Positions 18,961 through 54,414 of a stretch of DNA of 64,000 nt are shown here, one piece after another. The notes beneath the pieces are model-generated. The model was not told where the DNA came from. It ran no database searches and saw only the letters and a program-made list of their open reading frames with translations. Location of the stretch: assembly GCF_016433145.1 (NCBI RefSeq), contig NC_058133.1, positions 255,958,801 through 256,022,800 on the forward strand, in the 5' to 3' direction. Every line of letters begins with the position of its first letter. The stretch's first letter is position 1. The translations under genes and the position numbers were made by a program. This DNA is from Gracilinanus agilis. Taxonomy: Eukaryota.

Positions 18961-19133
18961 TTTTTTTTTTTGTTGTTTTGTTTTGTTTTTTTAAACCCTT
19001 GTACTTCGGTGTATTGTCTCATAGGTGGAAGATTGGTAAGGGTGGGCAATGGGGGTCAAGTGACTTGCCCAGGGTCACACAGCTGGGAAGTGGCTGAGGC
19101 CAGGTTTGAACCTAGGACCTCCTGTCTCTAGGC
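18961..19133 (-). mobile_element. 5'-truncated young SINE-1
   Basis: TSD CTCCTTTTACACT at 18948-18960 and 19134-19146. Nearly identical to the copy at 52588-52769. Confidence 0.92.
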
Positions 19134-26048: not shown

Positions 26049-26054
26049 TTTATT
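26049..26054 (-). terminator. candidate GNL1 polyadenylation signal (further candidates at 25835-25840 and ~25333-25338)
   Basis: AATAAA on the minus strand downstream of the stop codon. Which site is used is unknown. Confidence 0.45.
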
Positions 26055-26141
26055 CACAGTTGGGGACACGGAAAGGGGGTACCCCCAGATCAGTCCAAGA
26101 GCAAGGATGTTGGATAGGAAGGAGAAAAAAAGTTTGGAGAT

Positions 26142-32100: not shown

Positions 32101-32918
32101 TAACTGAGGAATCCAAGGACCTTCCTTAATTTTTTTTTTTACTCCAGTACATTTGAACTTTCTATTTCACATCCTTCCTCCTACACACTCCCCTCCATTA
32201 CCCTCAGGGCAAGTGAGTGGAAACCCCAAGTGCTAAGTTTTCTACCCTTACCTATTAGGATCATAGCGATGGCCAGAGCCGTGGTGGGTTGGCTGCTGGT
32301 TGAGCCGACGGATTTGCTGGGTCACAGATTCTCCATCAGAGGTGTCAGTCTGGTCCTCCCTCCGCTCCCGGCTCCCGCTGCGGCTGTTGGAGCTAGAGCG
32401 AAATCCATCCTGCAGCCCTGTGGCCAAGGGACATGACATCACCTGACGCCCAACTCTCATACACAGGCGCAGGCATCTGATTTGTCCAGCTCTCCCCTTC
32501 TAAACCAACTTCTATCCCCTACGGGGACCCAAATATTCTGCCTCTCTTCCCTTTATCTCCACACGCCAGAACTCTCTCAGCGCCTCCCAAGGAGGCAATC
32601 CCACTCCATGCGGGGGCCGTTCTTCTTCCAATTAAAGAAGTCCTCCTTCAGATGTGGATAGCTCTCTGTCCATTCCCTCCTCTTTCTGATGCGGGAGAGA
32701 TCAGTGGTTCTTCCTTCTCCTTTCGAAGAGAAACGGCTGACTCGGCCGGCCACCCTCCACCCCGGCTCCAGATGCAGAGTTCAGCCCTCTTTCCAGATGT
32801 GCGGGAGACTCAGGCCCCGCCCCCTCCTCTCCCTCCCGCACCTACCTCGCTTCCGCTCGCGCTTGTCCTGCAGCTGTTTCTTCTTCTGCTTCACGCTGAA
32901 AGGCTTCTTCCTCGGCAT
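26142..32918 (-). CDS. GNL1: Guanine nucleotide-binding protein-like 1 (circularly permuted GTPase), 606 aa
   Basis: Coding exons (minus): 32846-32918, 32252-32417, 31788-31924, 31506-31657, 31254-31325, 30330-30537, 30044-30139, 29330-29524, 28276-28454, 27910-28072, 26725-26865, 26142-26380. All introns are GT-AG; total 1821 nt, frame-consistent. The protein starts MPRKKPFSVKQKKKQLQ, has G4 NKVD, G1 GFPNVGKS and G3 DCPG, and ends LLGEDEC*, as in mammalian GNL1. Confidence 0.98.
26990..27395 (+). mobile_element. L3/CR1 3' end in GNL1 intron 10
   Basis: CR1-type 3' terminus (CTAGATAACCTCTGAGACCTTCTAAATTCTAGGA). Confidence 0.65.
27630..27800 (-). mobile_element. MIR fragment
   Basis: ACAGATGATGAAACTGAG.. 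is an antisense CORE. Confidence 0.7.
28790..28925 (-). mobile_element. MIR fragment
   Basis: CTCATTTTACAGATGAGGAAACAGAG is an antisense CORE. Confidence 0.7.
28944..29150 (+). mobile_element. SINE-1 in GNL1 intron 8
   Basis: Canonical head, body and tail. Confidence 0.9.
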
Positions 32919-34560
32919 GGCCCGGTCTGGCTCCCGTTGGTCTCCAGCCCTATCGGGGGTCCAGCCGCCGCCGCTTAGCCTCTACCTAAACCCCCCAGGC
33001 TGCCCCTGCCGCTTTGGGCCCGGGACCCTTGGGGGCGGGGCTCTGATATGACGTCACTCAGCGGGTCGGACCAAGTCTCGCCTCCTTAAGAAGTCGGGGG
33101 GGGGAGAGTGCGTTGTGGGTAGGAGAACACAGGGAGGACCACCGGTGTCCTTTGTGGGGAGGCCTCAGCCACTTCCTTCTGCGTAAAGTACAAGCGTGAG
33201 AAGTGAGACCGGGGGAAGTGCAGGGGCGGAGAGACGCGCGACGTGCCAGCCACACACCAGTCCCTCAGGAGTCCTGGGGAGGGATGGGGGCGGTACGGGG
33301 GGTGTGGAAGAGGGAGCCGCGCTGAGGCGCCGACCGACAGTACTGACTTCGTCACGGGCGATACCAATTCCCATTCGGAAGAAGGGGGTGAAGAAACCAT
33401 CCTTACCTTTCGTTCCTGGAGAGAATCTACCCAACTCACCTAGCGGAAGGGCCGGTGGGGTGAGTGGACTCTACCACTTGTGAGGTGAGGAAGAGCATAG
33501 GGTTAAACTAAATTGAACTAGAGGAGGAAGAAGGTTGATCATACCTGAAGGAAAGGGGAGGGGAGGGGGAGGGAGGAAAGGGTAATGAAGGACTAGGTTG
33601 CCCTGGAGATCCCTTCAGGGAAGGTCAGAGGTCATGCTCGGAAGAGCCGCGAGACTGTGCATCTAGTAAAAGTTAAAAAAAAAAAAAACAACTTAGGTGG
33701 AAATAAGCTAATAGAAGTAGAGTTTAAAAGGTTGTAATTGGGGGGCACTGGGGCTTAAATGGGCTAAGGATTCTTTGGGGGGAGGTCAGAGGTCATGAAG
33801 TTGGAAGCGGTGGCGTGGGCCGACTGCGGTTACCGAGGTTACCACGCTCCTTGCCTGCTCCTCCTCCTTTCTCCTCCCCCCCCCGAACGTTCTAGGCCGC
33901 GGTCCTCCCGACTCTATGATATGCTGAGAAGTGCTGTTTTTCTCTCTCTTTTTTTTCTTTAGGTGGGAGGTGTGTATGTGAGAGGGGGAAGGGGGGATAC
34001 TCATATTGGAACACTACAAGGAGGAAAGGCACGCGCCTGCGCACTCGCCGCTTCTGGATGGGTCTGTCGGAAGCGGAAATAACTGGATTCTCTCTCCCTC
34101 CATATACCGCCCCCTTCTCCCGCCGGCCGCGACTCTCCTCGCTGCAATTTCGCTGGCCGTGATGCCCAAGAGGGGGAAGCAGCGGCCACCGGACCCCGAG
34201 GAGAGTGGGGATGAGGAGAGTGGGAGCCCCGCTGGTAAGGGAGAGGTGCATGGACCTGAGGTGGGCCTGGAACAAGGGCACGAGACAAAACTCGCCAAGG
34301 CGTGGAGGGAGAAGGCGAGAACTGAACAAGATTAGTGAGGCCCGAAAGGGAAGGAGCCCACGTTGCGTCTTATTGTAGAGTCGCGCGAGGCAAGGCTAGG
34401 CAAGAAAGACGGTCTCTTTCCCTCTTTTAAGGGGGGGTAGGGAGAGCTAAAAATGTAAGAGCGCACATGCGCCTACTCCCCCACCCCCGTACTATGGCGC
34501 GCCCGGGAAGGGGAGGAAGGGCGGGGGCGGCGGATGCACGTGCTTTGGGGTAATTGAAGA
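32600..34560. promoter_or_regulatory. CpG island / head-to-head GNL1-PRR3 promoter
   Basis: High GC and CpG density. Sites: CRE TGACGTCA 33049-33056, GC box 33032-33040, NRF1-like GCGCCTGCGCA 34033-34043, tandem ETS CGGAAGCGGAAAT 34068-34080. The divergent ATGs are at 32918 (-) and 34162 (+). Confidence 0.88.
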
Positions 34561-37188
34561 GTTGTGAGTGAGTCTAATACCAGGTTCGTAAAGAGTGAAT
34601 GTGCTTGCCTCTGACGTAGACAAATAAAAGTGAATGGACTGGGCTGCGCTAGCCGCCACAACCCTTCCCCCATTGTCTGCCCAGATCAAGTATAAAAGAA
34701 AGTTTCATAGTTCAGAATTATGGGAACGAGAATATCGAGTAATGAGCATTGTAGGAGGAGTTAAGAGGTTCTCATCCCAGTTGTTGACTCTGCCTGCAAA
34801 TTTGGGCAAGTTAATTGGCCACATTTCACCTCCTTATGTAGTGTTCTGTGTGGAGGGTGGACTAAATGACCTCAGGCACTTTACATCTATGTAGATATAA
34901 AATGTATGAGGGGTGAATGCTAATTAGGGAAGAGTTAACCCTCGCCTCTGCTGGCTCACACCCTACCCTTCCTAGAGGGGGGAAAATCTTTTCTTAGGTT
35001 TGCCTCTTGTGTCACTTTGATGCCCCCCTCCCACCTCTTATCTTGTTCGAGGAAATTGTTCAATAACCCTATCAGTTTAAGCACGCTTACCGAAAAGGAC
35101 TTAACTGTCTGCTATTCTAAGGCCCCACTCACAATCCCAGGCACTGTCTAAACCAAAATCTCTTCCCTAGCTCGTACTCCCCCTTGTGTTTTGTATCCCC
35201 AGTGCTGTCACACAAACGGTATTTCATAAATTTTTGTTGATTAATTGATTGCAAGAAGAGATTAATACCGAGTGAGGAAAATACTTTATTTAAATATTTG
35301 AAGTCTCCAATTGCGTTTATTGTCAGTCTTAGAATTGAGTTAGCTTTTCCTTTGATTAATGAGATCTGTGCAGTTTGGTATGTTTGGACAAAAATATAGT
35401 TTTGTGGGGTTTTTTACAAAGTTCAAAATGTCAATTGTTTATTTCCTTTTTAATGACATATTTATTGGATATTTTTATGCAAAAAAAAAATCTCCAGGTT
35501 TAAGTTAATTTTGTCCAAACACACAATTCAGCCTGCCTACCTCTGGTTCCCAGTGACAATAGCGTGAATCAGAGTAACCACTGAGAATAAAGGACAATAA
35601 GAATCCTGGAACTGACACCTTTAACCGGGATGATAAATGTTAGCTCCAACTTAGTTCTCCCATCCCTTTGGCCTCTGGCTTCATAAAGGCGGGTGTTAGC
35701 TTGGAAAAAGGGTCTCCTTCCACTTTCTTATACTTGAGACCTTCAACTTCTGGGTTAGAGGACAATTACAGGTTTATCCATAGGCCTCTATTTGTTCTGT
35801 GGAGGAGCCTTTTTCTCCCATAGTACAGTTTTCCTATTTATTTCCTGGTGGTTTATTTTTCTTGTTATTTTCTAAGATGTCGATAACAGATTATGCTTTT
35901 TTTGATTCTTCTGAAGTATGATATATTTTGCTTTGATCTATCAATATGATATTCTGTACGTATTCATAGAAAGTAAGCACCTGAAGTGCAGACTTTTTCA
36001 TTTAGTCTTTGGTTCCCAAGACAGCACCTTGCCCATAGATAATAGTAGGTCCTTAAGGGCTTGCTGGATTGAAGAGTACTGGGAAAATCAGTCAAGTCTA
36101 GTGCTCCCAAAGGTTTCAGTCATTACTCTATGCTATTGAGTCCTGAGATGAAGAGCAAAAAGAATAGAGAATTCATAGAGGTCCTGAGCTTTTGTGTAAA
36201 CTGGACTTTACTAAGTGTGGTCCCATTTGCTTATCTATCTTTTTCCTGCTCTTAGGTCCACCCAGCCTCTTGGGCCCTCCTCCCATAGCCAATGGAAAGT
36301 TTGGTGGCCCTGATCCAGGTGAGTGAAAAGGGTCTCAAAAGCCATAAGCCTAGATTGATTCAAATGAACACATTAAGTGCCTATTACTGGCAAAGCACTC
36401 TGAAAGTTCCTATATAGGAAATAGCAGGTCTTGGGGGTTGGGGGAGGTATTGGCATGAAATTCAAGAAGGAAAATTATTTCTGACCAACCTGAGTATTTA
36501 GCTGACCAGAAACTATCTTTCTGTTTGTCTCTCTTTAGGCTTCCACAGAAGCCCTCAGGGCTTAAGGGGACCAGTGATTCCACCACTCCTCAGCCTCCCA
36601 CTCCCTTTTTGGGGAGGATGCCCAATGAGAGGGGGCCCAGGACCTAGGCCTCGACCATACCTACATAGCCGTTGGGCCTATGAGGATCCAGAACCTAGGT
36701 GGGGAACAGGCTATGGGGATCATGCCAGGAATGGTCCTCCCAATGGATGGAGAAACCTTGGAGGGGGCAGTAGCCACCATCCGTCTAAGAATATCCCCTG
36801 GCCCAAGAATGACCCTCAACTCAAGGATGGAGTCCAGGAAGGTGATAGAACAGGTTAATATCATCATTCCTCATATTTTATTCCTGCCAGTAGTATATAC
36901 TGTGTCCAGAAGACTATGACTACAAACCCTAGAATGCCCTTCTTCCTTCACTGTGAAGTTACCTCACTATAGCTCTCTTTATGCATATAGCCTTGGGGGA
37001 TTTCTTAATCCTAGAAGACAAGCAATCCCTGGAGTGTTTTCCTCCTAAAATCTTAAGCTGCCTCTCTCCCACTTGCTTCCACAGATAAATCCAATCGCCC
37101 TATCTGCAGACATTTTTCAAAGGGCCACTGCCGCTATGAAGATCTTTGTGCCTTCTACCACCCAGGGGTGAATGGACCTCCATTGTAA
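34162..37188 (+). CDS. PRR3: Proline-rich protein 3 with C-terminal CCCH zinc finger, ~180 aa
   Basis: Exons 34162-34234, 36256-36318, 36539-36841 (or alternative donor at 36853), 37085-37188. All GT-AG and frame-consistent. Contains [15 protein letters not shown] and ends [29 protein letters not shown] (C3H1 finger). Confidence 0.96.
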
Positions 37189-37404
37189 AACTGTGCCTTC
37201 CACGAGTCAGGCTCCAGTGGACCTTTTCTATCCTGGAAGCCCATTACCCTGTTGTTCTTTGTTGGCTTCTCAAAGGTGTTACTGCCCAATGCCTCCAGCC
37301 AAGGAAGGAGCCTGAGCCTGATCCTCTTTCCTCCCTACCTGAGGGTCTAGGAGGATAGGGGGTCGGGGAGAGGGAATGAGGAGAGTGGCAGAAGAGGTTT
37401 TTTA

Positions 37405-37625
37405 AAAAATAATGTTTTATTGATAACTTTTGGTTTTTACACCATTGTCACTTCCCAGTAACACTCTTCCCTCAACCCTGTCTTGTAACAAAGAAAATCA
37501 CTTACACAAACAAGTCATCAAATGGACCACATCTCACAGTGTATGCAGCATTCCACATCAGTAGTGGTCTGAAAGATTTTCCATTCGTTGATCTGCATCA
37601 TCTGTGTTTCCTCTATTAGAGGTGT
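37405..37625 (-). mobile_element. antisense L1 3' fragment in the PRR3 3' region
   Basis: TTTTATTGATAACTTTTGG..CTTGTAACAAAGAAAA, the same family as ~47990-48140. Confidence 0.55.
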
Positions 37626-38263
37626 AATGGGGGGAGAGGTTTTGATTTCAATGCTATATTCCTTTACTCTTCTTTCCCCTGATAAGTTGTAATGGAAACC
37701 CAATTGGTGCTGTTCACCCACAACTTTTCCCTTTCAAGTATTACTTGTGGTTCTTGTGAGACCTGTGGTTCTTGTGAGCCCCTGGATAGTTTTGAAAAAA
37801 GACACTATCTTGACTTTAGTCTTGTCTTTTTAGTGGTGTCCTCCAAGCCCCTTCCTCACCTTCAGCAATAGATCTGAGAAATTCCCTGTAGCAAGATACC
37901 TTGTGATTCACCCGATTTCCCCATCTCCCCAAGTCATTCTGAGTGTGAAATAATGGTCCTTTAACTTACTCCTAATTTCCCTTCCCTTCCTCTCCTTTCC
38001 CCATATCTTAATTGGATTCTGTGAATCTCCACCCAGTATAGATCTCTGGGCAATGAAATTCCCCTATCTCACTGGTTGGAGTTTAGATGATACTACTGCC
38101 TTTACTGTTTTCCTTACCTTTTTCCTGTGTAGGTTTTCTGTGAAAACAGATTTTAAGATGTATGAGTAGAGCCTGGAGAAAGATTAGGGGATGTGGGGAA
38201 ATGGAGGGACTGGAGCCATGACTGGTTGAAAAGTCTTTGTTTTAGCGCTTTTTTTTTTAAAGT

Positions 38264-38269
38264 AATAAA
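38264..38269 (+). terminator. candidate PRR3 polyadenylation signal
   Basis: AATAAA ~1.1 kb after the stop codon, followed by T-rich sequence. Confidence 0.5.
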
Positions 38270-39379
38270 CTCAAAAGAAACATTTTATTTAATCCTGGTA
38301 TTCCTGTAGTCTGTATATGAGGAACAGAGAGTATTCTAGTATAAGCTAAAATACACATTCCTCTTTGGCACTTAAAACCTTCTACTCTTGGCTCCAGCTT
38401 GTTTTTTAATGTTTTATTTCCCATTGCTTTTTATGCCCTCTTGTGTTTCCTACTCAACTGGCTTATTTGCTGTTGCCCAATACAGGACATTTCATTTCCT
38501 GCTTCTAAACCTTACCCTCATTACCTGAAATGTTCATCCACCTCACCATTGCCTCTCAGTATCCCCTAACTCTTAAAGGCTTAGTTCACATGCAACATCC
38601 TGCACAAATCTGATCTCCCTAGTTGCTGGACTCCATTCCAATACCTTTGTATATACTTCATATTTACCTATCTATATTCATGTTGTTTGTATCTTTCCCT
38701 TTCCCTATAGTAGAATGTAAGCTTAAGGGCAGAGATTTGTTTTTGTTCCAGTGTGTCCCTGTTGCTGAGTACAATGCCTTGCACATAAGCAGGCACTTAA
38801 TAAATTCTTGAATTGAGTTATATTGAATCGTTGAAGACAAGTCTGGTTCGATCACTTTGTTGGTGGTCTTTGGTCTTATGTGTTGTCCTGGATAAAATTA
38901 TACTCTGAAATCATGTACCCCTCTATTGATAACAAATTTTTACATTATCCGGAAGCTCCACAGAACTGCTGGGTCCTTGCTGTCTTGAGTCCAAAATTTC
39001 ATAGTCTCAGGTAGTGGGAGGTCGTTTAAGCCACCTTTCTCCACTTCCACCCCACTTCCCTTTTTCCAGAAGAGGAAACAGTCCCTGAGTGGCTAAATGA
39101 TGGCATTACCAGGTACCCACTATTCTTAGCGCAACTACCTAGGCTGTAAGGCTTCTCTCCCATGATTCCTGAAACACCCCTGCCTGGGACCAGCTGCTTC
39201 TCCAGTTCGGATTCTGTGATCCCTTGTGGCGGAAGGGATGCCCGCGGCAGAAACTTGATCTGAAATTGCATTTGTCCCCCCATTCCCCTTGGAAATGTTG
39301 CAACGACTTAGTCTTTATTAGTGGAAAGGCCCAGCTACAGCTCTCATGAGTCATATTCGAAGACTCTGCCCGGAGTTCT

Positions 39380-39900
39380 AAGTCTAGTAAAAGCTATGAG
39401 GACGCATGGATCCGGCCCCATCCTGCAGTCATTAATTCAAGAACCTCAATCTAGTCTGCTACAGGCCAGAGCGTGCGTGGGGGAAGCGGGAACGCGTCCG
39501 GGTCGCGTCGCCTGTACCCTATTGGATCTCGTATTACTTAGCCTTCCCCCAAGCCACCGGAAACGGAAGTAGAGCTAGCAGCACCCGGAATAGTCTTAAC
39601 TGCCGCCGCGATGCCGAAGGCGGGGAAGCAGCAGCAGCAGCAGCTACCGGAGCCGGAGTGGATTGGGGACCGAGAGAACTCCAGCCCTGCTGGTGAGAGA
39701 ACAAGACGGACCATTAGAGAGCGAGGCCAGGGGGAGCCTAGGGTCGCACGTGTCCGAGGGAGGAGAGATGGGGAAAGCAGGCGCGAGGTAAAATCCTAGT
39801 CTGACATCTGTCGGAGAGCGTGCGACCGGGGAAGACAGTGCGCGTGCGCGGGTTTAGAAGCTGGCCTGCTGAGAGAATGTGAAGAATCCTCGGACCCTGA
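39380..39900 (+). promoter_or_regulatory. ABCF1 CpG-island promoter
   Basis: CpG-rich; inverted CCAAT (ATTGG 39521-39525); tandem ETS/GABP site ACCGGAAACGGAAGT 39556-39570. Confidence 0.85.
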
Positions 39901-39982
39901 AAGTTTAGGGTGGAGTGAGCATAAGTATAGTGGAAGCAGGTAGTGGCATGGGTGAGATTTGGGAGGAGAGAATACACATAAA

Positions 39983-40036
<54 letters not shown>

Positions 40037-43000
40037 GAGGGTAGGGATGGGAAAAATGGGAAACTCTCCGGCTTTTCCTCGATACTCCCTAATGTGGACA
40101 CTATTCTCCTATGACTCAATTATCAGTAAACCTAAGAAGGACAGGATCTCGGTGTCCCTCTCTAGGCCCTACCAGAATTCTAGATCTTTTAAGCAAAAGA
40201 AACAGTGGCAACTCTTCTTGTACCCCAAAACCATAGTATGGTGTCTGGAACATTTGCTCTTTTCTGATCATGGGTAAATCACTTAACCTAAATGAGCCTC
40301 ATGGTCTGTAAAATAAGGCTTGTGGAGGGGAAGAAAGGAGATTAATGAACTAGATGGCATCTTAAAAGTCTGTTCCAGTTATATGTAGTTGTATATCTTA
40401 TTGCTCATAGAAGAAAAAGGGGGGGAAAGATCTAGTTGTAGTCCTGAGAGATGATGAGGGTAATGAAGGATCATGAGATTAGGTCAAATTGAAATAGACT
40501 CTCTCTTCAGAAATAAAATGGAGTTATCTGCCTATGTTGGGAAAGAGATCCAGGGATTGGGCTAGTTTCATTAAGGCCCAATTCTAAGAGGAAAATAGAC
40601 ATTTGCTGAGTTTGGAGCAAATTTGAACTTTTGGGGAATTTAAAGATTGAGAAATAAAGGTATTGCTTATTTTTCCCTCCAGATAAGGTTGTCAAGAAAG
40701 GAAAGAAGGACAAGAAGACCAAAAAGACGGTGAGAAAAGTAGGGACTAGGAGGAAACTTAGAGATGGTAAATGGGCAATTGACAGTCTATAAAAGTAAAT
40801 AACTAAATGTGAGGGTTGGGGGCAATATAAGAAGGAAAGCTGGCAGGGGTGGTGGGGAAGGGACATATCTCCTTTGGCTATAATTGTTTTCCATCACTAC
40901 CCCAAATTCCTCTCATTTCTTCTTATTTCCTAGTTCTTTGAAGAATTGGCTACTGAGGAGAAGCACACTGGGGAGGAGGAAGAGGAAGAGAAGATAGCCA
41001 AAGAAAAAGAACAGCAGCAGGTATTTTGTGATAAGATCTATAAAACCAAAGTATCCAAAGTCAGCTTACTATTGTTCATGTTGACAGACTGGAGTTGTGT
41101 GTGGGAAGGGTAGATGATGGATCTGGGTTTTATTTGGCTATTCCATTATGCCTTTAGCAGCAACAACAGCAGAAAAAAAAGCGAGAAAACCGGAAAGGGC
41201 GACGAAAGAAGGATGTTGATGATGATGACGGGGAAGAGAAGGAACTTATGGAAAGGCTCAAGAAGCTTTCTGTGCCAGCCAGTGATGAGGAAGATGAGGG
41301 TGAGTAAGCAGGAATCCTAAACAGAAATCTTCAGAAAGAATGAGATTGCAAGGGGGACCAGATTCCTTTTGGGAAGCTGCAAGGTTAAGCATCCTGTTTC
41401 TCTTTTTTACTTTACTTTCTCCCTGTCGTTTCAGTACCTGTCCCAGTACCCCGTGGTGGAAAGAAAGCTAAGGTGAGCAATCCTATGTGGCAGATGGATT
41501 TCTCAGGTCAGAGTTATGGATTTCATTTCTTCACTTATGCTCTTCTTTCTTTCCCTAGGGTGGTAATGTGTTCGCTGCCCTGATACAGGACCAAAGTGAG
41601 GAAGAAGAGGAGGAAGAACAGCCATTAAAACCTGCCAAACCAGAGAAAAATAGAATCAATAAGGTGGGTAGGAATATTCTCTATAGTCTAGAATTGTGCC
41701 TAATTAATGTTTACAAAATTATTGTTCCTCTTTTCATCAAGTATAATATTCTGACACCTTTTACCTTCATTGCCATATTTATTGCCTGTTTAGTCTTTGC
41801 ACTTATGAGTTCTTATTTGAGCCTGTTTTATATACATAGCCAAAATAATTCTTCAAATGTGATTTTTAATCCTGATTCAGGAGCTCCTTTTTTGTTCAGT
41901 AAAACTTAAGTTCATGGCAATCAAAAAAAAGCCCTTTCTCTACCAGGCTTCTGTCTTTTTTCCCTCATTTTTTCACTATTCCCAAAGCACAGCTCATCCA
42001 TCACAGTCGGTATCATCCCATAGCATCCATCTTTCATGTCTCTTTTCCCTATGTATTGTTGTTCTAATCTGTCATTTATAATCTGGTTAGTGTTGTTGTT
42101 GTAGTTGTAGTAGTAATAATAAAAAAGCCCTTACCTTCCATCTTGGAGTTAATGCTTTGTATTGGCTCCAAGGCAGAGGAGTGGTAAGGGCAATGGCGGG
42201 ATTAAGTGACTTGCACAGGGTCACATAACTAGGAAGTGTCTGAGGCCAGATTTGAACCTAGGACCTCCCATCTCTAGGCCTGGCTCTCAATCCACTGAGC
42301 CACCCAGCTGCCCCCTAATCTGGTTAGTTTTGAGCAAATCACTGCATCTCTCTTTGGACCTCAGCATCCTTCTCTGTAAAATGAGGAACTAGGTTACTTC
42401 TGAGATAACTCTCAGCTCAGAATTTGTGGTCTTGTGTTCCTCTATGTCCTAAAATCAGTATGCACCACCTTTTAGGACACATTTCCCCAAAGAAAGTTTT
42501 CCCTCATTATGCCAGATTAAGGCCAGATATCTGTGCTGACAAAGAGTTTGTACTTGTGTTTCCAGCATATTTGTATTTTTTCCTCATGCCTGAATTTCTG
42601 CCTAGTTTATCCATCCAGTCTTCAAAGTTCTGGATCAGAAGACTCTCCTAGTTTTTTATCTCTGTCTCATAGAGACTATACAACATCAGTGAGATGTTGT
42701 GTAGAAAGTGCTATGGAAATGTTAGTAGTCAGCTATTGTTTTTATTGATATTACTACAACATGTGGAGCTGTTTTTGCCATTCTCCTCAGGCTGTGTCCC
42801 AGGAGCAGCAGCCTGAGCAGAAGGTCAGAAAGGGGAAGGAAGAGAAGTCAAAAGGGAAAGTGAAGGTAAAGAAAATCTCTTGGGAATGTTAGGAAGAACA
42901 GCCATAGGAATTTCACCTGCTAAAACTACTATACTTTGCCAATCAGCCTCAGAATAAATTTGCTGCTCTGGATGATGAAGAGGAAGAAGAAGAAATAGCC

Positions 43001-46000
43001 AAAGAGAAGGAACTTTCCAAACAAGGGAAGGATAAACTCAAGAAAGTGGAACAGCAGGTATGGGGTTGAAGAGGCAGGTACTTCAAGAAAAGAATCAGGC
43101 ATGTCTGGTGAGGCTTGTGAAGGAGGATGAGGGGACTGGATCTCTGGGTTGACACAGATCATCATCTTGAGGGACAGAGGGACAGTGTGGCACAGGGTAG
43201 GTATTTAAAATCAGAACTGAAATTCAAAATCTTGTCTATTATCTACCACCTCTATTAAGATGAGCAATCATTTCTTCTTTCTAGGTCTCAGAGCCTTCAT
43301 AAGTAAAATGAGAATTTGACTTGATCTCTACTTTCTCTCTCTCTCTCTCTCTCTTTTTAAAACCCTTACCTTCTGTTTTGGAATCAATACTCTGTATTGG
43401 TTCCAAGGCATAAGAGTGGTAAGGACTAGGCAATCAGGATCAAGTGACTTGCCCAGGGTCACACTGCTAGGAAGTGTCTGAGATCAGATTTGAACCCAGG
43501 ACCTCCCATCTCTGGGCCTGGCTCTCAATCCACTGAGCTGCCCCCTCTAATATCTCTTGCAGTCCACAGTATATATGATTTGTGGGGTAATGAAGGCTCC
43601 CTAGTTCATTCATTTGTCTATCTACACTTTTTAAGTCTAATGTGCTATATGCTCACATGTTAGATACCAGATGTTAGATTATAGTCATTTTTTCATTTTT
43701 CATTCCTTTGTTCAAAAAATGTTAAGTTAAAAGATGAGGAAACCAAAGACAGCTTTGTAATATTCTATGGAATTTGAGATTCTAATCTAGTTGGTACCAG
43801 TTGTTTGCTTGAAGCCTCAAGGTCTAGCCTCTCCAATTTGGAGAAGCCTCTCCAAATTAACATTTATTTACTACTTCTTGTGAATGTTTTATCATCCAGC
43901 AAAATATAAGCTTCCTGATTTGTTTTGTCTCTGCCTTCCTTACACCATACACAGTGTCTTGGTTGTGCATATGGCCACTATTGAATTGAATTCCAACACA
44001 TAATTAATTGTGAAATAGTTCCAGAGAAAAGTACCAAATAACAAATTCCTTGGTCCTTGAGGGACCCAAAACTTTGGTTACTTATTGTTTATCCATTCTC
44101 ATAGGGCTCAGAGGAGGAAGGAGAAGGGGATGAAGAAGAAGAGGGTGAGGTCAAAGCAGATGATCCCTATGCTCACCTCAGCAAGAAGGAGAAAAAGAAG
44201 CTAAAAAAACAGGTGAATTGGGGAGCTTATGAGGGAGGAGGAACAGCATCTGGATTCCTGAGAGAAGAGGGATCAGATGCTTGGATTTCTAGGACTAATG
44301 GAAATTAGGAAGAAAAGAAACCTGAGGCTTTAAGGGACTATGTAGGGTCTAGCTGAAGGAAGAAATTATTTGGACCATGTGACCAGGGTTGTATGCCTGG
44401 GTATAGGAGGGTAGGATTGGATTATATCTAAATCCATTCTTTTTTTCTGTTTGTAGATGGAGTATGAAAGACAAGTAGCTACACTAAAGGCAGCCAATGC
44501 TGCTGAAAATGATTTCTCAGTGTCCCAGGCTGAAGTGTCTTCCCGCCAGGCCATGTTGGAGAATGCTTCTGACATCAAGGTGGGTGGGCCCTGAAGCAGA
44601 GTGGGGTGGGAAAAGAATTAATGGGTAGAAACAGTGCCATCTTGAGGAAAAGAGGTTTGGAATGAGTTGTATAATAGGGAAAGGAACATTTACCTTTTAG
44701 AGTAGGTTATTTCAGAGGGTATGGAATGTACAGGTTGACTTTGCCATTAAAAACAATGGGGAACTGAAATGGGAGAAAAGATTTTCACTCCATTTTAGTG
44801 ATGGGAGGTGTGGTACAGTCATCATAACATGACATGGTAGTGACTTATTTTCTCTCTTCTACTGTCCCTTATTCCCAGCTGGAGAAGTTTAGCATCTCAG
44901 CCCATGGCAAGGAGCTCTTCGTTAATGCAGACCTGTACATTGTGGCTGGCCGCCGCTATGGGCTAGTGGGGCCCAATGGGTGAGGAGAGGGAAGGGTCAT
45001 AGGTAGAGGGATTTGGGTCATAAATCCAATTCTGACTGCTCTTTCCCCTCAGTAAGGGCAAGACCACGCTGCTCAAACACATTGCCAATCGAGCTCTTAG
45101 CATCCCTCCTAATATAGATGTGTTGCTTTGTGAGCAAGGTAGGCATAAAGAGGGATTGGGGAGGGCAGGGAGGATGAAATAATTAGGAAGTGAGGTGGGT
45201 GGCTATATGAATGGTATGGGGAGATTGGCCTGATATAAGGGGGAGAGGAAGAGAAGAAAGACTTGATGGAATTTTGAAGGAGAAATGTAGGTGTATTGTA
45301 CTAAGGAAAGAGAAACCTGTGGAAAGAACTAGACAGAATTTGAAGGAAACTAAGAGATAAAGCGAGCCCTCTGGGAGGCCAGGTGCCTGAGCTCCAGTCC
45401 AAGAACCACAACCCTTTGCCCCATCACAGAAGTGGTAGCTGATGAGACCCCAGCTGTCCAGGCTGTGCTTCGTGCTGACACCAAGAGGCTGAAGCTGCTA
45501 GAAGAGGAGAAGAGGCTCCAGGGAAGGCTGGAGCAAGGAGATGATGCTGCAGCAGAGAAGCTTGAAAAGGTGAAGGACATACAGGGGACAAGACATAGGA
45601 GGACATTCAGGGACTTGCTTTTTATCAAACTGTGTTAATGAAAGAACAAGTGAGTGAAAAGTACTTACTGTATGTCAAGCACAGGGTGAGTTAGAAATAC
45701 AAAAGTTTGGGTTTGAGAAGCTACAGGGAAAGTGAGAAGAGTCAGTTGGCATGATGGGGAATGGGATAGGATGTGAAGCATGATCTAGAGTGGCCTAAGT
45801 ATAGAGTGGACACCATGTGGAAAGCAAAGTGAGTAAGCTGTTCAGGACTTAAGGATCATCATTATCCTTTTATCTTTCTTCCAGGTATATGAAGAACTTC
45901 GAGCTATGGGAGCTGCTGCAGCAGAGGCCAAAGCCCGGCGAATCCTTGCTGGTCTGGGCTTTGACCCCGAGATGCAGAATCGACCCACACAGAAGTTTTC

Positions 46001-49000
46001 AGGGGGCTGGCGTATGCGTGTCTCCCTAGCCAGGTAGAACTAATTCCACCAATCCCAAAGTGTCCTTTCCATGTTTTTTTGCTTTCCATTATTTCCGGGG
46101 GCCCATCCAGATGTGTAAAGAAAGAAATAATTCCTTTCCTACTCACTGCATATTGGCATAGTTGAGTACCTAAATTTTTCCTTATTCTGCTTTTAGTAGT
46201 ATTTTTGTATCTCAGCATCTTTAGCAGAAGGCAGGTAGGTGACTCAGTGGATAGAGCACCAGGCCTGGAGGCAGGAAAACTCTTCTTCCGGAGATCAAAT
46301 CTAGTACTAACTATGTGACCCCTGGCAAGTCATAACTGTTTGCCTCAGTTTCCTCATCTGTAAAATGAGCTGGAGAAGGAAATGGCAAACCACTCCAGTA
46401 TCTTTGCCAAGAAAACCCCAAATGGGGTCATAAAGAGTTGGACACAGCTGAAACACCTGGACAACTTTTTAGCAGAACACTGGAAGGTTAAGGCTTTAGG
46501 CAAATGTCCTAGACTTTTCCCATTCCCTAATTTTTCAAAGGAAAATGGAGCATCTCTTAGGTAGAAGGGCCCTTTAATCAGCAGGGGTTAAAAAGAGACC
46601 TGTTTCTTCCTTCCTTGTAATCTCTCCTCTACTCCATATTATAGGGCACTTTTCATGGAGCCTACACTACTGATGTTAGATGAGCCTACCAACCACCTGG
46701 ACCTCAATGCTGTCATTTGGCTCAACAAGTGGGTCATCTTCAAGCCTAGCCTTTCTATTTACATTCATCTTGGGATTCCTTTATTATGTCATATTGATTT
46801 ATCTTCCCTCTTTACTTCAGATCCCAGATATCTTTTCATTTTCCTTGACACCTTCCAAAAACAAACATCTTTCTATGACACCTCCAAATTTCACCCTTTC
46901 TGATTGATTTTATCTTCCTTTTAATCCTGTCTTTAATTTCAACATTGATGAACTTACCCACTTCCTTTTTTTTCCCCAAAGTTATCTTCAGGGCTGGCGG
47001 AAGACACTGCTCATTGTATCCCATGACCAGGGTTTCCTGGATGACGTTTGTACTGATATTATCCACCTGGATGCCCAGAGGCTCCATTACTATAGGGGCA
47101 ACTATAGTAAGTGGAGAATGATGAGGGCAAAGGGATTCTTCTTCACCTGGGATCTTCTAGCACACTAAAGGGGATGGAGAAGTGGGCAAGAGGGCATAAT
47201 GATAACCTAAACACTGCCAAGACGCACATTCTATCCCAAATTGGCAAGAGGGCAGCTGCTGATTCTTACCTTCTCTTCCTGTCTTAGTGACATTCAAAAA
47301 GATGTACCAGCAGAAGCAGAAAGAGCTTTTGAAGCAATATGAGAAGCAGGAAAAGAAGCTGAAAGAGCTTAAGGCTGGGGGCAAGTCCACCAAGCAGGCG
47401 GTGAGACACAGGGGCAGGGGCAGATGACACACAAGTCTTTGGCAACTAGCATGTTTTGTTGAGTAGCCCTGACTTGAGTTTTCCTTTAGGGAGTCAAGGC
47501 TTCTGTTGAGCACACCCTTTCAATTTTTCTCTAGGGTGGGATAAGGGAATTACGCCCAGAGGTCCTTGTAATCTGATACATGCAGATTGCATGATACCTA
47601 TGCTTCCATTTCCTACCTCCCCAGGAGAAGCAAACCAAGGAGGCCCTGACTAGGAAGCAGCAGAAATGCCGGCGGAAGAACCAGGATGAAGAGGCACAAG
47701 AGGCACCTGAGCTTTTAAAGCGACCAAAAGAATATATTGTGCGATTCACTTTCCCTGATCCTCCACCACTGAGCCCCCCTGTGCTAGGACTGCATGGTTA
47801 GTGGAGAGCCTATAAGGCAGGACTAGGATATATGCACACACAACCTTAAACTTATCCAACTGTCTCTACTCCCCACATCCTAGCCCTATTTCTTCCCTGT
47901 TACCATATTGTCTCCCTTCTTTCCTTCCCTCCCCTTCCCAGAACTGACAAGCAATTCAATCTGGATTATGCACATATTATCATGCAAAACATATTTCCTA
48001 GTGCTATTTTTACCCCTAATAGTTTATTTTTTGTTTTGCTTTATTTATGCTTTTGGTTTTTTTAAACACTACCCTACCAGTTACTTATCACCTCCCTTGA
48101 GAAGACTCTTTTCCTTGTAACAAAGAAAACAAGTTAAGCAAAACAGTTCTTGCTTAGGCCTTTTTCCTGCTCAATTTACTCCAAGATAAGGCTGAGATAT
48201 TTTTGTAGCCCAGGGAAATAGATGAAGAAGCCCAGGCTAACTTAACCATATTCCATTTCTTATCCTAGGTGTAACATTTGGCTATGAGGGACAGAAGCCA
48301 CTCTTCAAGAATCTGGACTTTGGAATTGACATGGACTCAAGGAGTGAGTTAGAGGGATAGGAGTAGCTAAGGGTTGTGGGGAATAGAAATGGGAAGCCAA
48401 AGAAAATTACTATAGGAATTTTCTTTTTTTTTTCCCCCCCTTTAAACTTGTCCTCCAGTATGCATTGTAGGCCCTAATGGTGTGGGGAAGAGTACGCTGC
48501 TGCTTCTGCTCACAGGAAAGCTGACTCCAGTAAGTTTGGGGATCCCATCTCCCACTGATTCTTCTCTATAAGCCTAGGTCTCTCTGCCTTCCATTTTTAG
48601 TATTTAAGGGGGAAAACTGAGGGAGAGGTATGACTTAATGTTTTATTAGTGTGTGAATTCTAGAATTTCCCCTTGAGAGAGACAAGTGAGGATGTTGAAA
48701 TTATAGTATAAAGGGGACCCTAGACCTTGACCACCTTTCCCTATATGAACAGAAATCTGTTCCCAGGAGTCTCTGTTAGTGGGTACACAGTTACTTAACC
48801 CCATATTCCTGCCCTCTCTTACCCAAGGAAGCTATACCAGTTGTAATTATTCCTCTTTCTAAACATAGATGTTCCTAGGAAACCTCTACTAATAGTATTA
48901 TTTGTTTAGGGCTAATTATCCCCTCCACCGGCACCATATCTCTAATGTCTTTCTTTTCCATCTCCCATGAGTCAGACTTGATAGCTTTTCCCTTGATAGT

Positions 49001-52000
49001 TCTACATATGTAACTCATTTGTTACTCCCTCCCTCCCCCACTCCCCAACAAAATGGCAAGAGTGCTGTGCACTTCTATCATCACAATTACTTGTATCTTG
49101 GGTATTGGCTGTTACCTTTCCCCTCTGGTCTCAGTATTCCCTAGGAGAATTCAACTAACTGGGGAGAGATAGCGCTCTCTAAACTGTGGGAAGTGCCTGG
49201 CCCTTTAATTTAAAGGCCATGATGGCCCTATTTCCATCTTTTTTAAAATTTTATACTTTTTTTTTAAATCATAAAAAATTTTCCACAAAAGTTTTCCCAA
49301 ACTTATATAATCTATATTATCTCCCTCCCTTCTTCACCTCCCCTCCCAGAGCTGATACACAATTCAACCTGGGTTATAGGTGCATTTTCATGCAAAACAT
49401 ATCCCTATTCATTTTTGTAAGTGAATAATCTTATAAAACCCAAACCCCAAAACATATACCCAAATAAACAAATGATAAATCGTATGTTTTCCTCTGCATT
49501 TATACTCTTAACAGTTCTGTCTCTGGAGGTGGATAGCGTTCTTTTTCATAAGTCCCTCGGAATTGTCCTGGATCATTGTGTTGCTGTTAGTAGCAAAGTC
49601 TTATAGTTCTAGTTCTGTTGCCTCTTCCTCCCGTTGTATTGTAGGAACTTGCTTCCTTTCAGAAGTAGTTGCTGTACCACACATAACCTATTCTTAGAAT
49701 ATATGGGGTATTCAATAATGATGATATATATTCTCCCAGTGCACTTATTGCTTGCCTTAAATAGGACTTGCAATAATTTGCTACCCTAAATATTTGTAAT
49801 CATAATAATTTGCTACCCTAGATATTTGTAATCATCCTATTTTCCAAGCTATTAGACTCAAACAAAACACGAAAGGATATAAGGCTTTATTTTTTAGGAT
49901 GTTTTTATTCATACTTTTCAGTTTTTCACTTCTCCATAATGGCCCCCAGAATCCTTCTCCCTCTCTGAGAGAGCTATCAGGGAAAGTTAGCCTAACTGAG
50001 CAAGACATGAAAAGGGCTGAAAATATGTATACCTCCCACTTTTGCAGAGGGGGATAGAGGGACGACTGTCTTCTCCAATCTCTTCTTTTTGAGCCATGCT
50101 TCTTTATCATTTTTTCAAACTTCACTTTTGATTTTGTGTATGTGTGGTTTTCTGTTTATATTGTTGTAGTCATCGTGTATATTGTTTTCTTGACTCTTCA
50201 CTCTACATCAAATCATACAGATCTTTCTTTCTATGCTTCTTTTAACAACATAGTAGTAATCCGGTATTCATGAACCACAGATTACTTAGCCATTCCACAA
50301 TCAATAGCATCTATTAATTAATTTGCAATCCTTTGCTTTTAGAAAAAATGCTGCTGTAAATATTTTGCTATGTAAGGAACTTTCTTATCAATAACTTCTG
50401 GAATATAAAGCCAATAATGGAATCTCTGAGTCAAGAAATAATGGACATTTTATTCACTTTATTTACATAATTCCAAATTACTTTCCAAATGGTTGTACAC
50501 AGTTCTGCCAGCAATGTACCAGTGTGCTTTCATAACAGTGACTAAATTCATCTTTGCTAATTTGAAGGGTATGAGGAGAAACTTTAGATTTATTCTGATT
50601 TACATTTATTATTTGTGATTTGGAGCATTCTTTCATATGGTTGTTAGTAATTGACAGTTCTTTTGAGAATGATTTGTGAATAGTCCTCGATTAACTATTG
50701 GAGAAATAGTTAACTTCAATGTGTATAATACTACTGAGCATAATATTCTGTTCTTTTGCTATTGATCAGGTTGTCCCTTTTACTGTAACCCTACTCTTTC
50801 TGAGCCATTAAGTCACATATCTCCTTTCCCTCTCTCCCAGCAATGTTCTTATTTTTTCTTTCTTTTTTTATTTAAAATTTTTATTTTTAAAAATTTTTCC
50901 ATGTTTACATAGTTCATTTTCTTTCCCTCCCCACTTTCCTCTCCACTCCTGGAGCCAACAAGGAATTCCACTGGGTCGTTACAAAAGTTATCACTTGATG
51001 CCTATTTTTGTATTATTCATTTTTGCTATAGAGTGATTTTTTTAAAACCTAAATCCCAATTCACATACCCATATATACATGTGATTAGTGATATCATATG
51101 TTTTTCTTTTGCATTTCTACTCCCATAGTTCTTTCTCTCAATGTGGTTAAGCCTTCTTTCACATAAGTCCTTCAGAACTGTCTTGGCTTGTTGCACAGTC
51201 CATTACATTGAATTGTTCCACACTGTTTTATTTTCTGTGTACAATGTTCTGATTCTGCTCATTTCACTCTGTATCAGTTCATTGAGGTTCTCTCAGTTCA
51301 CATTGAAATCCTCCAGATCATTCTTCCTTACAGCACAATAGTATCCATCACCATCAGATACCACAATTCGTTCAGCCATTCCCCAACTGAGAGACAACCC
51401 TTCATTTTCCAATTTTTTTCTACCACAAAGAGTGTGACTATGAATATTTTTATACAAGTATTTTTCTTTATTATCTCTTTGGGGTATAGTGTTATCCAGC
51501 AGTGTTCTTAGGTTAAAGACAGTTGGAGGTACACCTGGGCTCTTATCACCCCACCTCACCCCTCTACTTCTCTAGTCCCCCCTTAGCTTGTTCTCTTTCC
51601 CTTTTATTGCCTATTTATTCCCTATTTATTGCATGGGTACTAGGGTGCAATGGGGAGGGCTGCTCCATTTCCCCAACTGAAGACAATTTTTTGCATATCC
51701 CGCCACTCTGTCCAGCCACACGATGCCAATACTTCCTCCCTCCACTGTCTGGAGTAATTCAGGGGGTTTCAGGCAGCTTGAAAAGTTGCATTTTGGGCAT
51801 GTGATCTTGAAAACGTTTGCCAATGCAGCCATAGCACATCCCAATGGCAGAATACATGACAGGAAACAAATCACAACTTGGATAACCCATTACCTTGAAT
51901 TATATGAAAGATAAGAAAAAAAGTACTGAGAATGTTAGAAATATTTACAGATATTCTATCTATAACAATTTAGTGAGGAGAACTTAATGATGTTTAGGAG

Positions 52001-54414
52001 AAAAAAAATTGTAGACTATGAAAAAGTCAGGTTTGGATTCAAGACAATGAACAGTCTCATCTCCAGAGGACCTAAACTGAATTGCCCACTGACCAAGAGA
52101 AGTGGTGGTCTCAAGGGCCAGAATAGCCCCTATGTGGACTGTGCTTGTTGCTTATAAGGGAGTTTTTCCCCTTTTTTAATGGAAAGGAAAAATTCAGAGA
52201 GGTAGGAGAGCTAGCAATAGTGATAAGCCAAAAAAAAAAAAAATGCTACAGAAACTTTTTTTAATGAACAGAATGATGAAATGAAAAGAATTTTGAAAGG
52301 AAGCACTAAGACGCAAGACAGTTTTTGAAAGTTATATGTAGAATTTATTAGTAATATCTTTTTCTGGGGGCAGCCAGGTGGCTCAGTGAGTTGAGAGCTA
52401 GGTCTAGAGACAGGAGGTTCTAGGTTCAAATTTGGCCTGCTAGTTGTATGACCCTGGGCAAGTCACTTAACCACTCCATTGCCTAGTCCTTACTGTTCTT
52501 CTGCCTTGGAATCAATATACACTATAAGGTATAAGGTAAGGGTTTAAAAAAGTGATAATATCCTTTTCTAAAAAGCAAGTGAAATAGGGGCAGCTGGGTA
52601 GCTCAGTGGGGTGAGAGTCAGGCCTAGAGACAGGAGGTCCTAGGTTCAAACCCGACCTCAGCCACTTCCCAGCTGTGTGACCCTGGGCAAATCACTTGAC
52701 CCCCATTGCCCACCCTTACCAATCTTCCATCTATAAGACAATACACCGAAGTACAAGGGTTTAAAAAAAAAAAAGCAAGTGAAATAGACACTCATGTTTT
52801 TATATAGTCATTTTTGTAGTCTGCATAATATAGAGTGGCTCTTTGTTTTGTGATGTTTAAATTCATTAAAAAAAAATAAAAAGCAATTTTAAAAAATAAC
52901 TTATGTAGATAGAACCTGGTCTAGGACTTAGAATCTAGCTTTCAGCTCTCTTCCCAGCTTTAAGATCATGGCCAGGTCACATTTCCCTTCTCTGAGCCTC
53001 ACACATTCCTCTGAAAAATGAAGGTGTCAGACTAAATGTTATTTAAAGGCCCTTCTAGCTCTAAAATGTTATGATTGGTGACATGGATTAACCACAGCCT
53101 CCACATTTTTCTTTTGTGCTTATGAGAGAGAAGGAAAGGGAGAGGGTGAGAGAAAGAAAATGAAAGAAAATGGAGGGTTTGATCTTGAGTCTAGACCTGG
53201 TTGGAATTTGTTGCCTCCTGATTATTGAGCCTGTCTCTTTCCCCCTCCCCTATTACATTTCTTTTTTGCCAATCTCAGCCAGCTCTATTGTCTTACTTTT
53301 CTGCATTACCTTTGAGCATAAGTGGACTTTTGTGCTCCTTTCTCTTATTTATTCCTGGTGCACCTCTGGTATTTGTCTGCTTTGAGAACAGGATATATAA
53401 TTCTACCTTCTTGGTTATTACTTTCTTAATCTCCTCTTCTTTTCTGTGCAGACTCAAGGGGAGATGAGGAAGAACCATCGTCTGGTAAGCTCTAGAGAAT
53501 CTAGTATTGGGAGGGGAGCGAGGTGGACTGAATACTCTTTTTTTTCTGACTATCCTTTCTCCCTGTGGTAGAAAATTGGCTTCTTCAACCAGCAATATGC
53601 AGAGCAGCTGCGCATGGAAGAGACAGCCACTGAGTACCTTCAGCGGGGCTTCAACTTGCCTTACCAGGATGCCCGAAAGTGTCTGGGCCGATTTGGCCTG
53701 GAGAGCCATGCCCATACCATCCAGATCTGCAAACTCTCAGGTATGTCGTAGGGGCAAGGCTAAGGAGAATCTCATTTACACAATTCAGATACCTGGGAGA
53801 AACCAAATGTTTCAGCTGGCTGGCAGTTCTGGGAAGAATGAGGATTTTACCCTCTCTTTCTCCCATTTCCTCCTGCCCCAGGTGGACAGAAAGCTCGAGT
53901 AGTGTTTGCTGAGCTGGCCTGTCGTGAACCAGATGTCCTCATACTGGTAAGGCCACTAAAATTAAAGGGAAGGAGGTGGGAGAAGAAATGGATAGGTGTC
54001 TGGGCTACTAAACTGTGGGATCCTCCTGCTTCTTTCACAGGATGAACCAACCAACAACTTGGACATAGAGTCTATTGACGCTTTGGGAGAAGCTATCAAT
54101 GAATACAAGGGTGGTGAGTCAGTTTAGTACAGCCCAACTTTCCCATCCCTCCAGCATGTTCCCTTCTACGTCCTATTTCCCACAGGGATCCAAGTTCTCT
54201 CTTTTCTGCCTCATCCTGATTGATTTTTTTCCTCTCTTTTCCAAAAGCTGTAATTGTCGTCAGTCATGATGCTCGGCTAATCACAGAAACCAACTGCCAG
54301 CTTTGGGTGGTAGAAGAGCAGAGCGTCAGCCAGATTGATGGAGACTTCGAGGACTATAAGAGGGAGGTGCTGGAGGCCCTGGGTGAGGTCATGGTCAATC
54401 GACCTCGAGAGTGA
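39611..54414 (+). CDS. ABCF1: ATP-binding cassette sub-family F member 1 (ABC50), 846 aa
   Basis: Coding exons: 39611-39692, 40683-40729, 40934-41020, 41158-41299, 41435-41472, 41559-41663, 42791-42865, 42947-43057, 44105-44212, 44457-44579, 44879-44979, 45053-45138, 45430-45569, 45885-46033, 46645-46728, 46982-47106, 47288-47400, 47625-47796, 48269-48343, 48459-48529, 53452-53484, 53572-53740, 53882-53946, 54041-54113, 54248-54414. All GT-AG; 2541 nt in frame. NBD1: GPNGKGKT / FSGGW / [13 protein letters not shown]2: GPNGVGKS / LSGGQ / [10 protein letters not shown]. Ends VMVNRPRE*. Confidence 0.98.
39985..40034. repeat. (GT)25 microsatellite in ABCF1 intron 1
   Basis: 50 nt of uninterrupted GT. 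Confidence 0.97.
40255..40385 (+). mobile_element. MIR fragment
   Basis: ATCACTTAACC..GAGCCTC..CTGTAAAAT CORE-like sequence. Confidence 0.55.
42092..42315 (-). mobile_element. SINE-1 antisense in ABCF1 intron 6
   Basis: TSD TAATCTGGTTAGT at 42079-42091 and 42316-42328. Confidence 0.92.
43334..43545 (-). mobile_element. SINE-1 antisense with (CT)n tail
   Basis: Reverse complement of SINE-1; CT run at ~43334-43354. Confidence 0.88.
46228..46455 (+). mobile_element. MAR1-type CORE SINE with RTE/BovB-derived tail
   Basis: CORE followed by GGAGAAGGAAATGGCAAACCACTCCAGTATCTTTGCCAAGAAAACCCC..GGGGTCATAAAGAGTTGGACAC. Confidence 0.85.
49240..51500 (-). mobile_element. several antisense L1 3' fragments in ABCF1 intron 20
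   Basis: Repeated L1 3'-end blocks at ~49240-49620, ~49990-50760 and ~50860-51500, matching the 6838-7995 family. Confidence 0.8.
49772..49835. repeat. 32-bp tandem duplication
   Basis: AATAATTTGCTACCCTA(A/G)ATATTTGTAATCAT twice, with one mismatch. Confidence 0.9.
52365..52550 (+). mobile_element. SINE-1
   Basis: Canonical head, body and tail. Confidence 0.88.
52588..52769 (+). mobile_element. young SINE-1
   Basis: Perfect 18-bp TSD AAAAAGCAAGTGAAATAG at 52570-52587 and 52770-52787. Confidence 0.95.

Follow-up and report, generated by a model that had tools for sequence, protein, structure and literature searches.

A probable chimeric origin of the therian gene PRR3 from its neighbours ABCF1 and PPP1R10

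Introduction

PRR3 is a conserved human gene in the MHC (major histocompatibility complex) class I framework region, and its function is listed as unknown. In the opossum Gracilinanus agilis it lies within a stretch of 64 kilobases (kb) of contig NC_058133.1 (RefSeq assembly GCF_016433145.1, positions 255,958,801 to 256,022,800), called the window in the following, which contains three relevant genes: GNL1 on the minus strand and PRR3 and ABCF1 on the plus strand. PRR3 and ABCF1 have the same orientation and are separated by 5.4 kb; their first exons look alike, and the rest of ABCF1 is unrelated to PRR3, as the original prediction for this locus had already held. The question is where PRR3 obtained its parts. 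The comparison of its exons with those of its neighbours suggests, with a probability which we put at roughly 0.8, that PRR3 is a DNA-level chimera, in which exon 1 would derive from ABCF1 and the remaining exons from the last three exons of PPP1R10, the gene for PNUTS. Such a mosaic would explain the source of the gene.

Results

The first exons of PRR3 and ABCF1

Exon 1 of PRR3 codes for 24 residues and exon 1 of ABCF1 for 27 residues, each followed by a split G and a GT. Both exons end in GCT G/GT in phase 1 (the slash marks the exon-intron border), and the start codons are embedded in the contexts GGCCGTGATG and CGCCGCGATG, respectively. The exon coordinates, donors and start contexts of the original prediction were all recovered by reading the sequence, and both donors were confirmed by RNA contigs. 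With one gap of three codons, 15 of 24 residues are identical, in agreement with the earlier count, and 51 of 72 codon-aligned bases match; including the last G, 52 of 73 bases (~71%) are identical and not 53 as had been counted before. The gap is due to a (CAG)5 run of ABCF1 at 39629-39643, which codes for QQQQQ and is specific to didelphid opossums. Opossum PRR3 exon 1 and bat ABCF1 exon 1, both 73 nucleotides (nt) long, are aligned without any gap, again with 15/24 identical residues and 51/72 identical bases. When each exon 1 with flanks of 600 nt was compared with the window by blastn, the respective other exon was the best match (34156-34186 with 39605-39635) after self matches and a dinucleotide repeat had been set aside. 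The strongest non-self matches of the ABCF1 intron-1 flank are dinucleotide microsatellites at 18482-18526 and 39972-40045.

Short, acidic, GC-rich first exons which both start with MPK and carry an SP site might resemble each other by chance or convergence, without common descent. Only 24 codons are aligned, CpG-island first exons often contain codons for K, Q, E, G and P, and the flanks are without similarity: the blastn comparison gave no matching bases in intron 1 or more than ~6 nt before the ATG. However, the nucleotide local score of the exon pair is 23, compared with 9.4 +/- 1.7 for shuffled sequences, and was reached by one of 20,000 dinucleotide shuffles and by none of 20,000 codon shuffles. 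At the protein level the BLOSUM62 score of 68 (shuffled 23.9 +/- 4.9, z ~9) was reached by 0/20,000 composition-matched shuffles, and a profile-profile comparison (hhalign) of 15 PRR3 with 16 ABCF1 exon-1 peptides resulted in a probability of 85% and P = 6.2e-6. The two exons agree in length, phase and donor context, both genes have a rare promoter motif in common, and the rest of PRR3 is clearly copied from the next neighbour, so that local copying is the expected source of exon 1 as well. Chance or convergence is for these reasons considered very unlikely, and the shuffle test which the original prediction had called for came out in its favour.

A second alternative is gene conversion, by which unrelated or long-diverged first exons of adjacent genes would have been made or kept alike through non-reciprocal exchange. 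The short distance and the common orientation of the genes fit such an exchange, as do the identical codons at 11 of the 15 identical residues and the presence of Gly5 and SPA in both marsupial PRR3 and marsupial ABCF1. Opossum PRR3 is, however, equally near to bat ABCF1 and to opossum ABCF1, and 10 of 15 identical residues share their codons in the comparison with bat. The high share of identical codons is thus also seen across species and is therefore ascribed to codon bias and slow change rather than to recent conversion. Moreover, Gly5 is ancestral for ABCF1 (MPKAGKQ in lizard), SPA is widespread in placental ABCF1, and placental PRR3 (K5, SPI) and placental ABCF1 (P5, SPT/SPA) have no lineage-specific states in common. 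Recent conversion was rejected on the equality of the cross-species and the within-opossum identity, which was determined for one species pair, and conversion in general is regarded as highly improbable. The first exons of PRR3 and ABCF1 are best read as paralogues which go back to an old duplication and not to chance, as the original prediction had proposed; the likeness is equal in marsupials and placentals and across species.

The residues M, P, K3, K6, E, G, D and E of exon 1 are conserved in both genes. The Trp of ABCF1 (EW[IV]GD), invariant from fish to mammals, is replaced in all PRR3 sequences, which weakens the earlier suggestion that the common N-terminal motif serves a common partner; the shared peptide is probably a relic of common ancestry rather than a docking motif. 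Placental PRR3 proteins (P0004-P0065) carry a variable Gln/Pro-rich insertion of 8-13 residues after KQ. The position directly behind KQ is a site of repeat expansion in both paralogues, with QQQQQ in didelphid ABCF1 and the insertion in placental PRR3.

The original prediction had included the promoter in the duplication, and this part of it stood only partially: a tandem ETS-type motif precedes both genes, and base similarity ends ~6 nt upstream of the ATG. The motif pattern CGGAARCGGAAR, which was picked after inspection of the alignment, has only two matches in the window, one before each ATG, with 0.02 expected. It is conserved in the PRR3 promoter of tenrec and the ABCF1 promoter of bat, and these two promoters have the identical 16-mer CCGGAAGCGGAAACAG in common. 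Together these observations give modest support to the view that promoter sequence may have been copied along with exon 1.

Exons 2 to 4 of PRR3 and the 3' end of PPP1R10

A search of the lizard locus first showed that the last exon of PRR3 resembles the last exon of PPP1R10, and the bat locus then gave an exon-for-exon match. All three exons yield collinear blastn matches to bat PPP1R10. PRR3 exon 2 corresponds to the third-from-last exon of PPP1R10 (LLGPGPIANG in PPP1R10; blastn match at 36267-36295) with z = 3.7, a score which on its own is weakly significant since 16/5000 shuffles reached it. Exon 3 corresponds to the beginning of the second-from-last exon (36620-36661; z = 8.1, 0/5000 shuffles) with the common sequence GxHxGPxGxxGPV.P.LL...FW...GPPNG and a further stretch of 13 residues before GPPNG. 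Exon 4 corresponds to the last coding exon, with which it shares 28/35 residues in bat, the CCCH zinc finger included (z = 30); the base identity is 76% over 121 nt and begins 21 nt inside the intron. Both proteins end with GPPL(P) before the stop codon.

The gene structures agree as well. All six acceptor and donor positions are found at the same aligned residues and in phase 1 in PRR3 and in PPP1R10 of bat, lizard and gull, and the two introns measure 220 and 231 nt in PRR3 versus 165 and 240 nt in bat PPP1R10. The similarity reaches beyond the coding region: a poly(A) context ATTAGTAATAAA..GTGGAAA is located ~1 kb past the stop codon in PRR3 of opossum, bat and tenrec as well as in PPP1R10 of bat, lizard and gull. 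The conserved AATAAA of the opossum lies at 38264-38269; RNA contigs continue to 38469-38779, which points to either a second poly(A) site or read-through.

Exon 4 of the window passes the Pfam threshold for zf-CCCH (PF00642) with 27.6 bits at a cut-off of 20.5, and so do the PRR3 proteins P0001 and P0004. The marsupial finger is of the form C-x7-C, its first two Cys being one residue closer together than in placental PRR3 and PPP1R10 (C-x8-C); despite this it scores above the threshold, and its Cys/Cys/Cys/His ligands are present. Other CCCH fingers, taken from a PDB set, reach at most 26 bits over 22 residues, and a look-alike search of the ESM Atlas with PRR3 yielded nothing but clusters of PRR3 itself and generic CCCH clusters. 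In the Pfam scan zf-CCCH is the only domain of PRR3. The protein has no ABC ATPase domain and is hence not an ABC-F protein, and the Med26/TFIIS-type domain (PF08711) of PPP1R10 is missing from it, which makes PRR3 a partial paralogue and not an orthologue of PPP1R10.

Direction of copying, taxonomic range and age

ABCF1 proteins of placentals, marsupials, lizards, birds and one fish-like vertebrate start with an exon of the form MPK..K..W..D, and its phase-1 donor was read in the DNA of lizard, gull, fish-like vertebrate, bat and opossum. In contrast, all relatives of PRR3 which were detected with a full-length marsupial query belong to marsupials or placentals. In the lizard Sceloporus GNL1(-) and ABCF1(+) are arranged head to head at a distance of 1.76 kb, and 63 kb of this locus contain no PRR3-like sequence except the end of PPP1R10; likewise, no PRR3-like sequence besides the PPP1R10 tail was found in one gull locus and one fish-like locus. 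Because the ABCF1 exon is present in lizard, gull and the fish-like vertebrate, all without PRR3 nearby, ABCF1 is taken as the donor, and the copying of exon 1, the direction of which had been left open originally, is read as having run from ABCF1 to PRR3. By the same reasoning PPP1R10 is the apparent donor of exons 2 to 4: it carries the tail in lizard and gull, and the fish-like PPP1R10 has a weak zf-CCCH match. ABCF1 is complete in the window and PPP1R10 is annotated downstream in bat; both parent genes are intact beside PRR3.

The sequences also bear on the age of the gene. PPxPE and SPA occur in PRR3 exon 1 and in therian ABCF1, not in sauropsid ABCF1, and PRR3 exon 2 is nearer to bat PPP1R10 than to lizard PPP1R10. 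The states in common with therian ABCF1 imply that the copy was made on the mammalian stem before the marsupial-placental split. We infer that PRR3 was born after the separation of mammals and sauropsids and before marsupials and placentals parted, an interval of ~320 to ~160 million years ago.

Alternatively, PRR3 might have arisen in the same chimeric manner at an earlier date, before the mammals, and have been lost in sauropsids. Its absence was checked in just one lizard and one gull, the word-indexed protein search could overlook diverged orthologues, and a zebrafish survey of 2005 mentions PRR3 only as 'not found' (PMC1309616), which we count for this alternative. On the other hand, PRR3 shows the states of the mammalian parents and not those of the lizard, gull or fish parents: exon 1 has PPxPE and SPA, exon 2 has LLGPxPIANG and exon 4 has SNRP. 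We therefore consider an earlier origin unlikely. PRR3 does not appear in the accessible part of the gene-age supplement of PMC11960464.

The order of the genes differs between the lineages. Therians have GNL1(-) PRR3(+) ABCF1(+) PPP1R10(-) (see also PMC4753418), and the lizard has the same order without PRR3. In the gull (L004, 1-23783) the order is PPP1R10(+) ABCF1(+) GNL1(+). The gull thus has ABCF1 in the reverse orientation as compared with lizard and therians, and the small block was inverted at least once in amniotes. The fish-like locus (GCA_006348945.1) shows the order syntaxin(-), ABCF1(+), MRPS18B(-), PPP1R10(+); in it a gene of 84 residues is called inside ABCF1 on the opposite strand (18623-20454).

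Proposed origin of PRR3

The findings combine into a probable course of events. Both presumed parents are housekeeping genes. From ABCF1 the new gene would have received the 5' end: the core promoter together with the tandem ETS-type motif, the surroundings of the ATG, 24 codons and the phase-1 donor. PPP1R10 would have contributed its 3' end, beginning with the third-from-last exon and reaching past the poly(A) site, with stop codon and poly(A) signal included. Since every boundary is in phase 1, the ABCF1 donor would splice in frame onto the PPP1R10 acceptors. The product would be composed of an ABCF1-type N-terminus of 24 residues, a Pro/Gly-rich stretch and a PNUTS-type C-terminal CCCH finger, and both parents would have remained intact after the birth of PRR3. 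PRR3 retains the parental intron positions and phases, which argues for a copy at the DNA level and not for a retrocopy. In total, PRR3 joins segments of two parents with kept introns beside intact parents, and it is expressed as one spliced mRNA with an open frame. The simple tandem duplication of the original prediction is not supported, and the prediction missed that the rest of PRR3 would stem from the 3' end of PPP1R10, so that the event would be the birth of a chimeric gene and more than the gain of a first exon.

Two routes are conceivable. Starting from a gull-like collinear order, a single tandem duplication reaching from intron n-3 of PPP1R10 to intron 1 of ABCF1 would suffice; if the PRR3-ABCF1 block was inverted afterwards, the therian order would result. 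Starting from a lizard-like order, a complex inverted duplication with two template switches would be needed. A more far-reaching version, which we regard as doubtful, combines the one-step tandem duplication and later inversion with a function: a PNUTS tail under an ABCF1-type housekeeping promoter might compete with PNUTS for the same RNAs or for CARNMT1, the enzyme which modifies both fingers, and might so provide marsupials and placentals with a new layer of PNUTS-PP1 control that is absent from other vertebrates.

Several points weigh against the chimeric origin as outlined here. Exon 1 comprises 24 codons, is GC-rich and partly of low complexity, and the similarity stops at its borders, as described above. 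ETS-type motifs are common in CpG-island promoters, which adds to the choice of the motif after inspection. Exon 2 is weak when taken alone, and the 3' end of PPP1R10 was compared from bat, lizard and gull: a search for it inside the window found none, and the copy of this marsupial lies beyond position 64000. The taxonomic range of PRR3 was obtained by a word-indexed protein search which may miss diverged orthologues, and its absence was sampled in single lizard, gull and fish-like loci, a set with no monotreme, turtle, crocodile or amphibian.

Gene layout and transcripts of the window

The features of the window are compiled in Table 1. Same-species RNA contigs (100% identical, spliced) confirm the PRR3 joints 34234/36256, 36318/36539 and 36853/37085 as well as the first junctions of ABCF1, including 39692 to 40683, and the introns behind both first exons are of the GT..AG type. 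The spliced frame of PRR3 comprises 184 residues followed by a stop codon, with phase 1 at every intron. According to the RNA contigs the PRR3 mRNA extends from ~33992 (start at or before this position) to ~38779, and the region 38780-39499 is without any coverage by RNA contigs; PRR3 and ABCF1 are therefore regarded as separate transcription units. ABCF1 is complete within the window with its stop codon at 54412-54414, and its exons match ABCF1 of Gracilinanus agilis (P0342).

Table 1. Positions of the genes and sequence elements discussed in the text, numbered from the first base of the window.
Feature	Position	Strand	Remarks
Tandem ETS-type motif CGGAAGCGGAAA, PRR3 promoter	34068..34079	+	83-94 nt before ATG
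PRR3 coding exon 1	34162..34234	+	73 nt, phase-1 donor; N-terminus as annotated in marsupial PRR3 proteins P0001-P0003
PRR3 exon 2	36256..36318	+	63 nt, phase 1-1; RNA joints
PRR3 exon 3	36539..36853	+	315 nt, phase 1-1; RNA joints
PRR3 exon 4, coding part, CCCH zinc finger and stop codon	37085..37188	+	Pfam zf-CCCH 27.6 bits
Poly(A)-signal element AGTAATAAAC, PRR3 3' untranslated region	38261..38270	+	1.07 kb past stop; context as in PPP1R10
Tandem ETS-type motif CGGAAACGGAAG, ABCF1 promoter	39558..39569	+	42-53 nt before ATG
ABCF1 coding exon 1	39611..39692	+	82 nt, phase-1 donor; RNA joint 39692/40683
Rest of ABCF1, exon 2 to stop codon after ...MVNRPRE	40683..54414	+	Exons match P0342 at 96-100%; unrelated to PRR3
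GNL1 coding start	32844..32918	-	ATG at 32918; translation MPRKKPFSVKQKKKQLQDKRERKRG matches GNL1 starts of tenrec (L002) and lizard (L001)

GNL1 is arranged head to head with PRR3, with 1.24 kb between it and the PRR3 ATG. GNL1 starts with MPRKKPFSVKQKKKQ, which bears a superficial resemblance to MPKRKKQ of PRR3, probably a coincidence of basic N-termini. The distance from PRR3 to ABCF1 exon 1 exceeds 10 kb in the tenrec locus. In the bat locus (L003) many copies of a repeat of ~200 nt which resembles a short interspersed nuclear element are found in both orientations at 1500-8400 and 26000-29200, that is, between PRR3 and ABCF1 and past the 3' end of PPP1R10; these copies have nothing to do with how PRR3 arose. 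A metagenomic 'hypothetical protein' (P0072, JGI contig of 1812 nt) turned out to be a read-through of the last exon of a mammalian PRR3 and the intron upstream of it, and the contig probably represents host DNA in the sample.

Discussion

The human PRR3 protein exists, and CARNMT1 fully methylates H180 of its finger; H931 in the finger of human PPP1R10 is likewise methylated by this enzyme (PMC12275196). In vitro PRR3 binds AU-rich RNA motifs (bioRxiv 10.1101/201996). We infer that PRR3 is a small RNA-binding protein, a free-standing PNUTS tail that has neither the PP1-binding part nor the Med26-type part. It is expected to have RNA targets and histidine methylation in common with the PNUTS finger, perhaps also partners, but not the binding of PP1.

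No account of a chimeric origin of PRR3 was found in the literature, and the paralogue lists of genome databases may already link PRR3 with PPP1R10. The papers found on PRR3 were gene lists and functional studies. PRR3 and PPP1R10 are mentioned together only in gene lists, in a survey of the CCCH family which does not pair them, and in the CARNMT1 paper. The birth of a chimeric gene from neighbours is a known type of event, of which PRR3 would be a new and unusually clean case: a vertebrate example of in-frame phase-1 exon shuffling in which promoter, start, stop codon and poly(A) signal would have been inherited ready-made.

Compared with its presumed parents, PRR3 is similar to the C-terminal region of PPP1R10 in 28-29 of 35 residues of the finger exon, in the C-terminal end, in the intron phases and in the poly(A) context. 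It differs from PPP1R10 in that it is without the Med26/TFIIS-type domain, the PP1-binding part and the His-rich GHRPHEGPGG repeats, and its finger has fixed changes of its own (H, ED, L). With the N-terminal exon of ABCF1 it has MPKxxKQ, PPxPE, GDxE, SP, the length of 73 nt (bat ABCF1), the phase-1 donor and the upstream motif in common, whereas the Trp is lost and the Lys-rich region and the two ABC ATPase domains are absent.

Among known systems, Sdic of Drosophila melanogaster offers a comparison: this chimeric gene arose from duplicated segments of AnnX and Cdic, two genes which lie next to each other. As in PRR3, parts of two neighbours were joined at the DNA level, the parents were retained, and one of them gave the 5' end and the other the body of the new gene. 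Unlike PRR3, Sdic is a young, testis-specific gene that was amplified in tandem, and intron sequence supplied part of its promoter and first exon. PRR3 dates back at least to the marsupial-placental split, is single-copy, and would have received from ABCF1 an intact coding exon 1 together with a housekeeping-type motif.

A parallel for the mechanism is provided by a survey of Drosophila yakuba, which describes chimeric genes formed by tandem duplications spanning parts of two adjacent genes (PMC5460883). Compared with these cases, the parents of PRR3 are convergent in the lizard and therian order, so that an extra inversion or an inverted duplication would be needed. In a gull-like order, a duplication of the type found in D. 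yakuba would give exactly the structure of PRR3, namely the promoter and exon 1 of ABCF1 followed by exons n-2, n-1 and n of PPP1R10.

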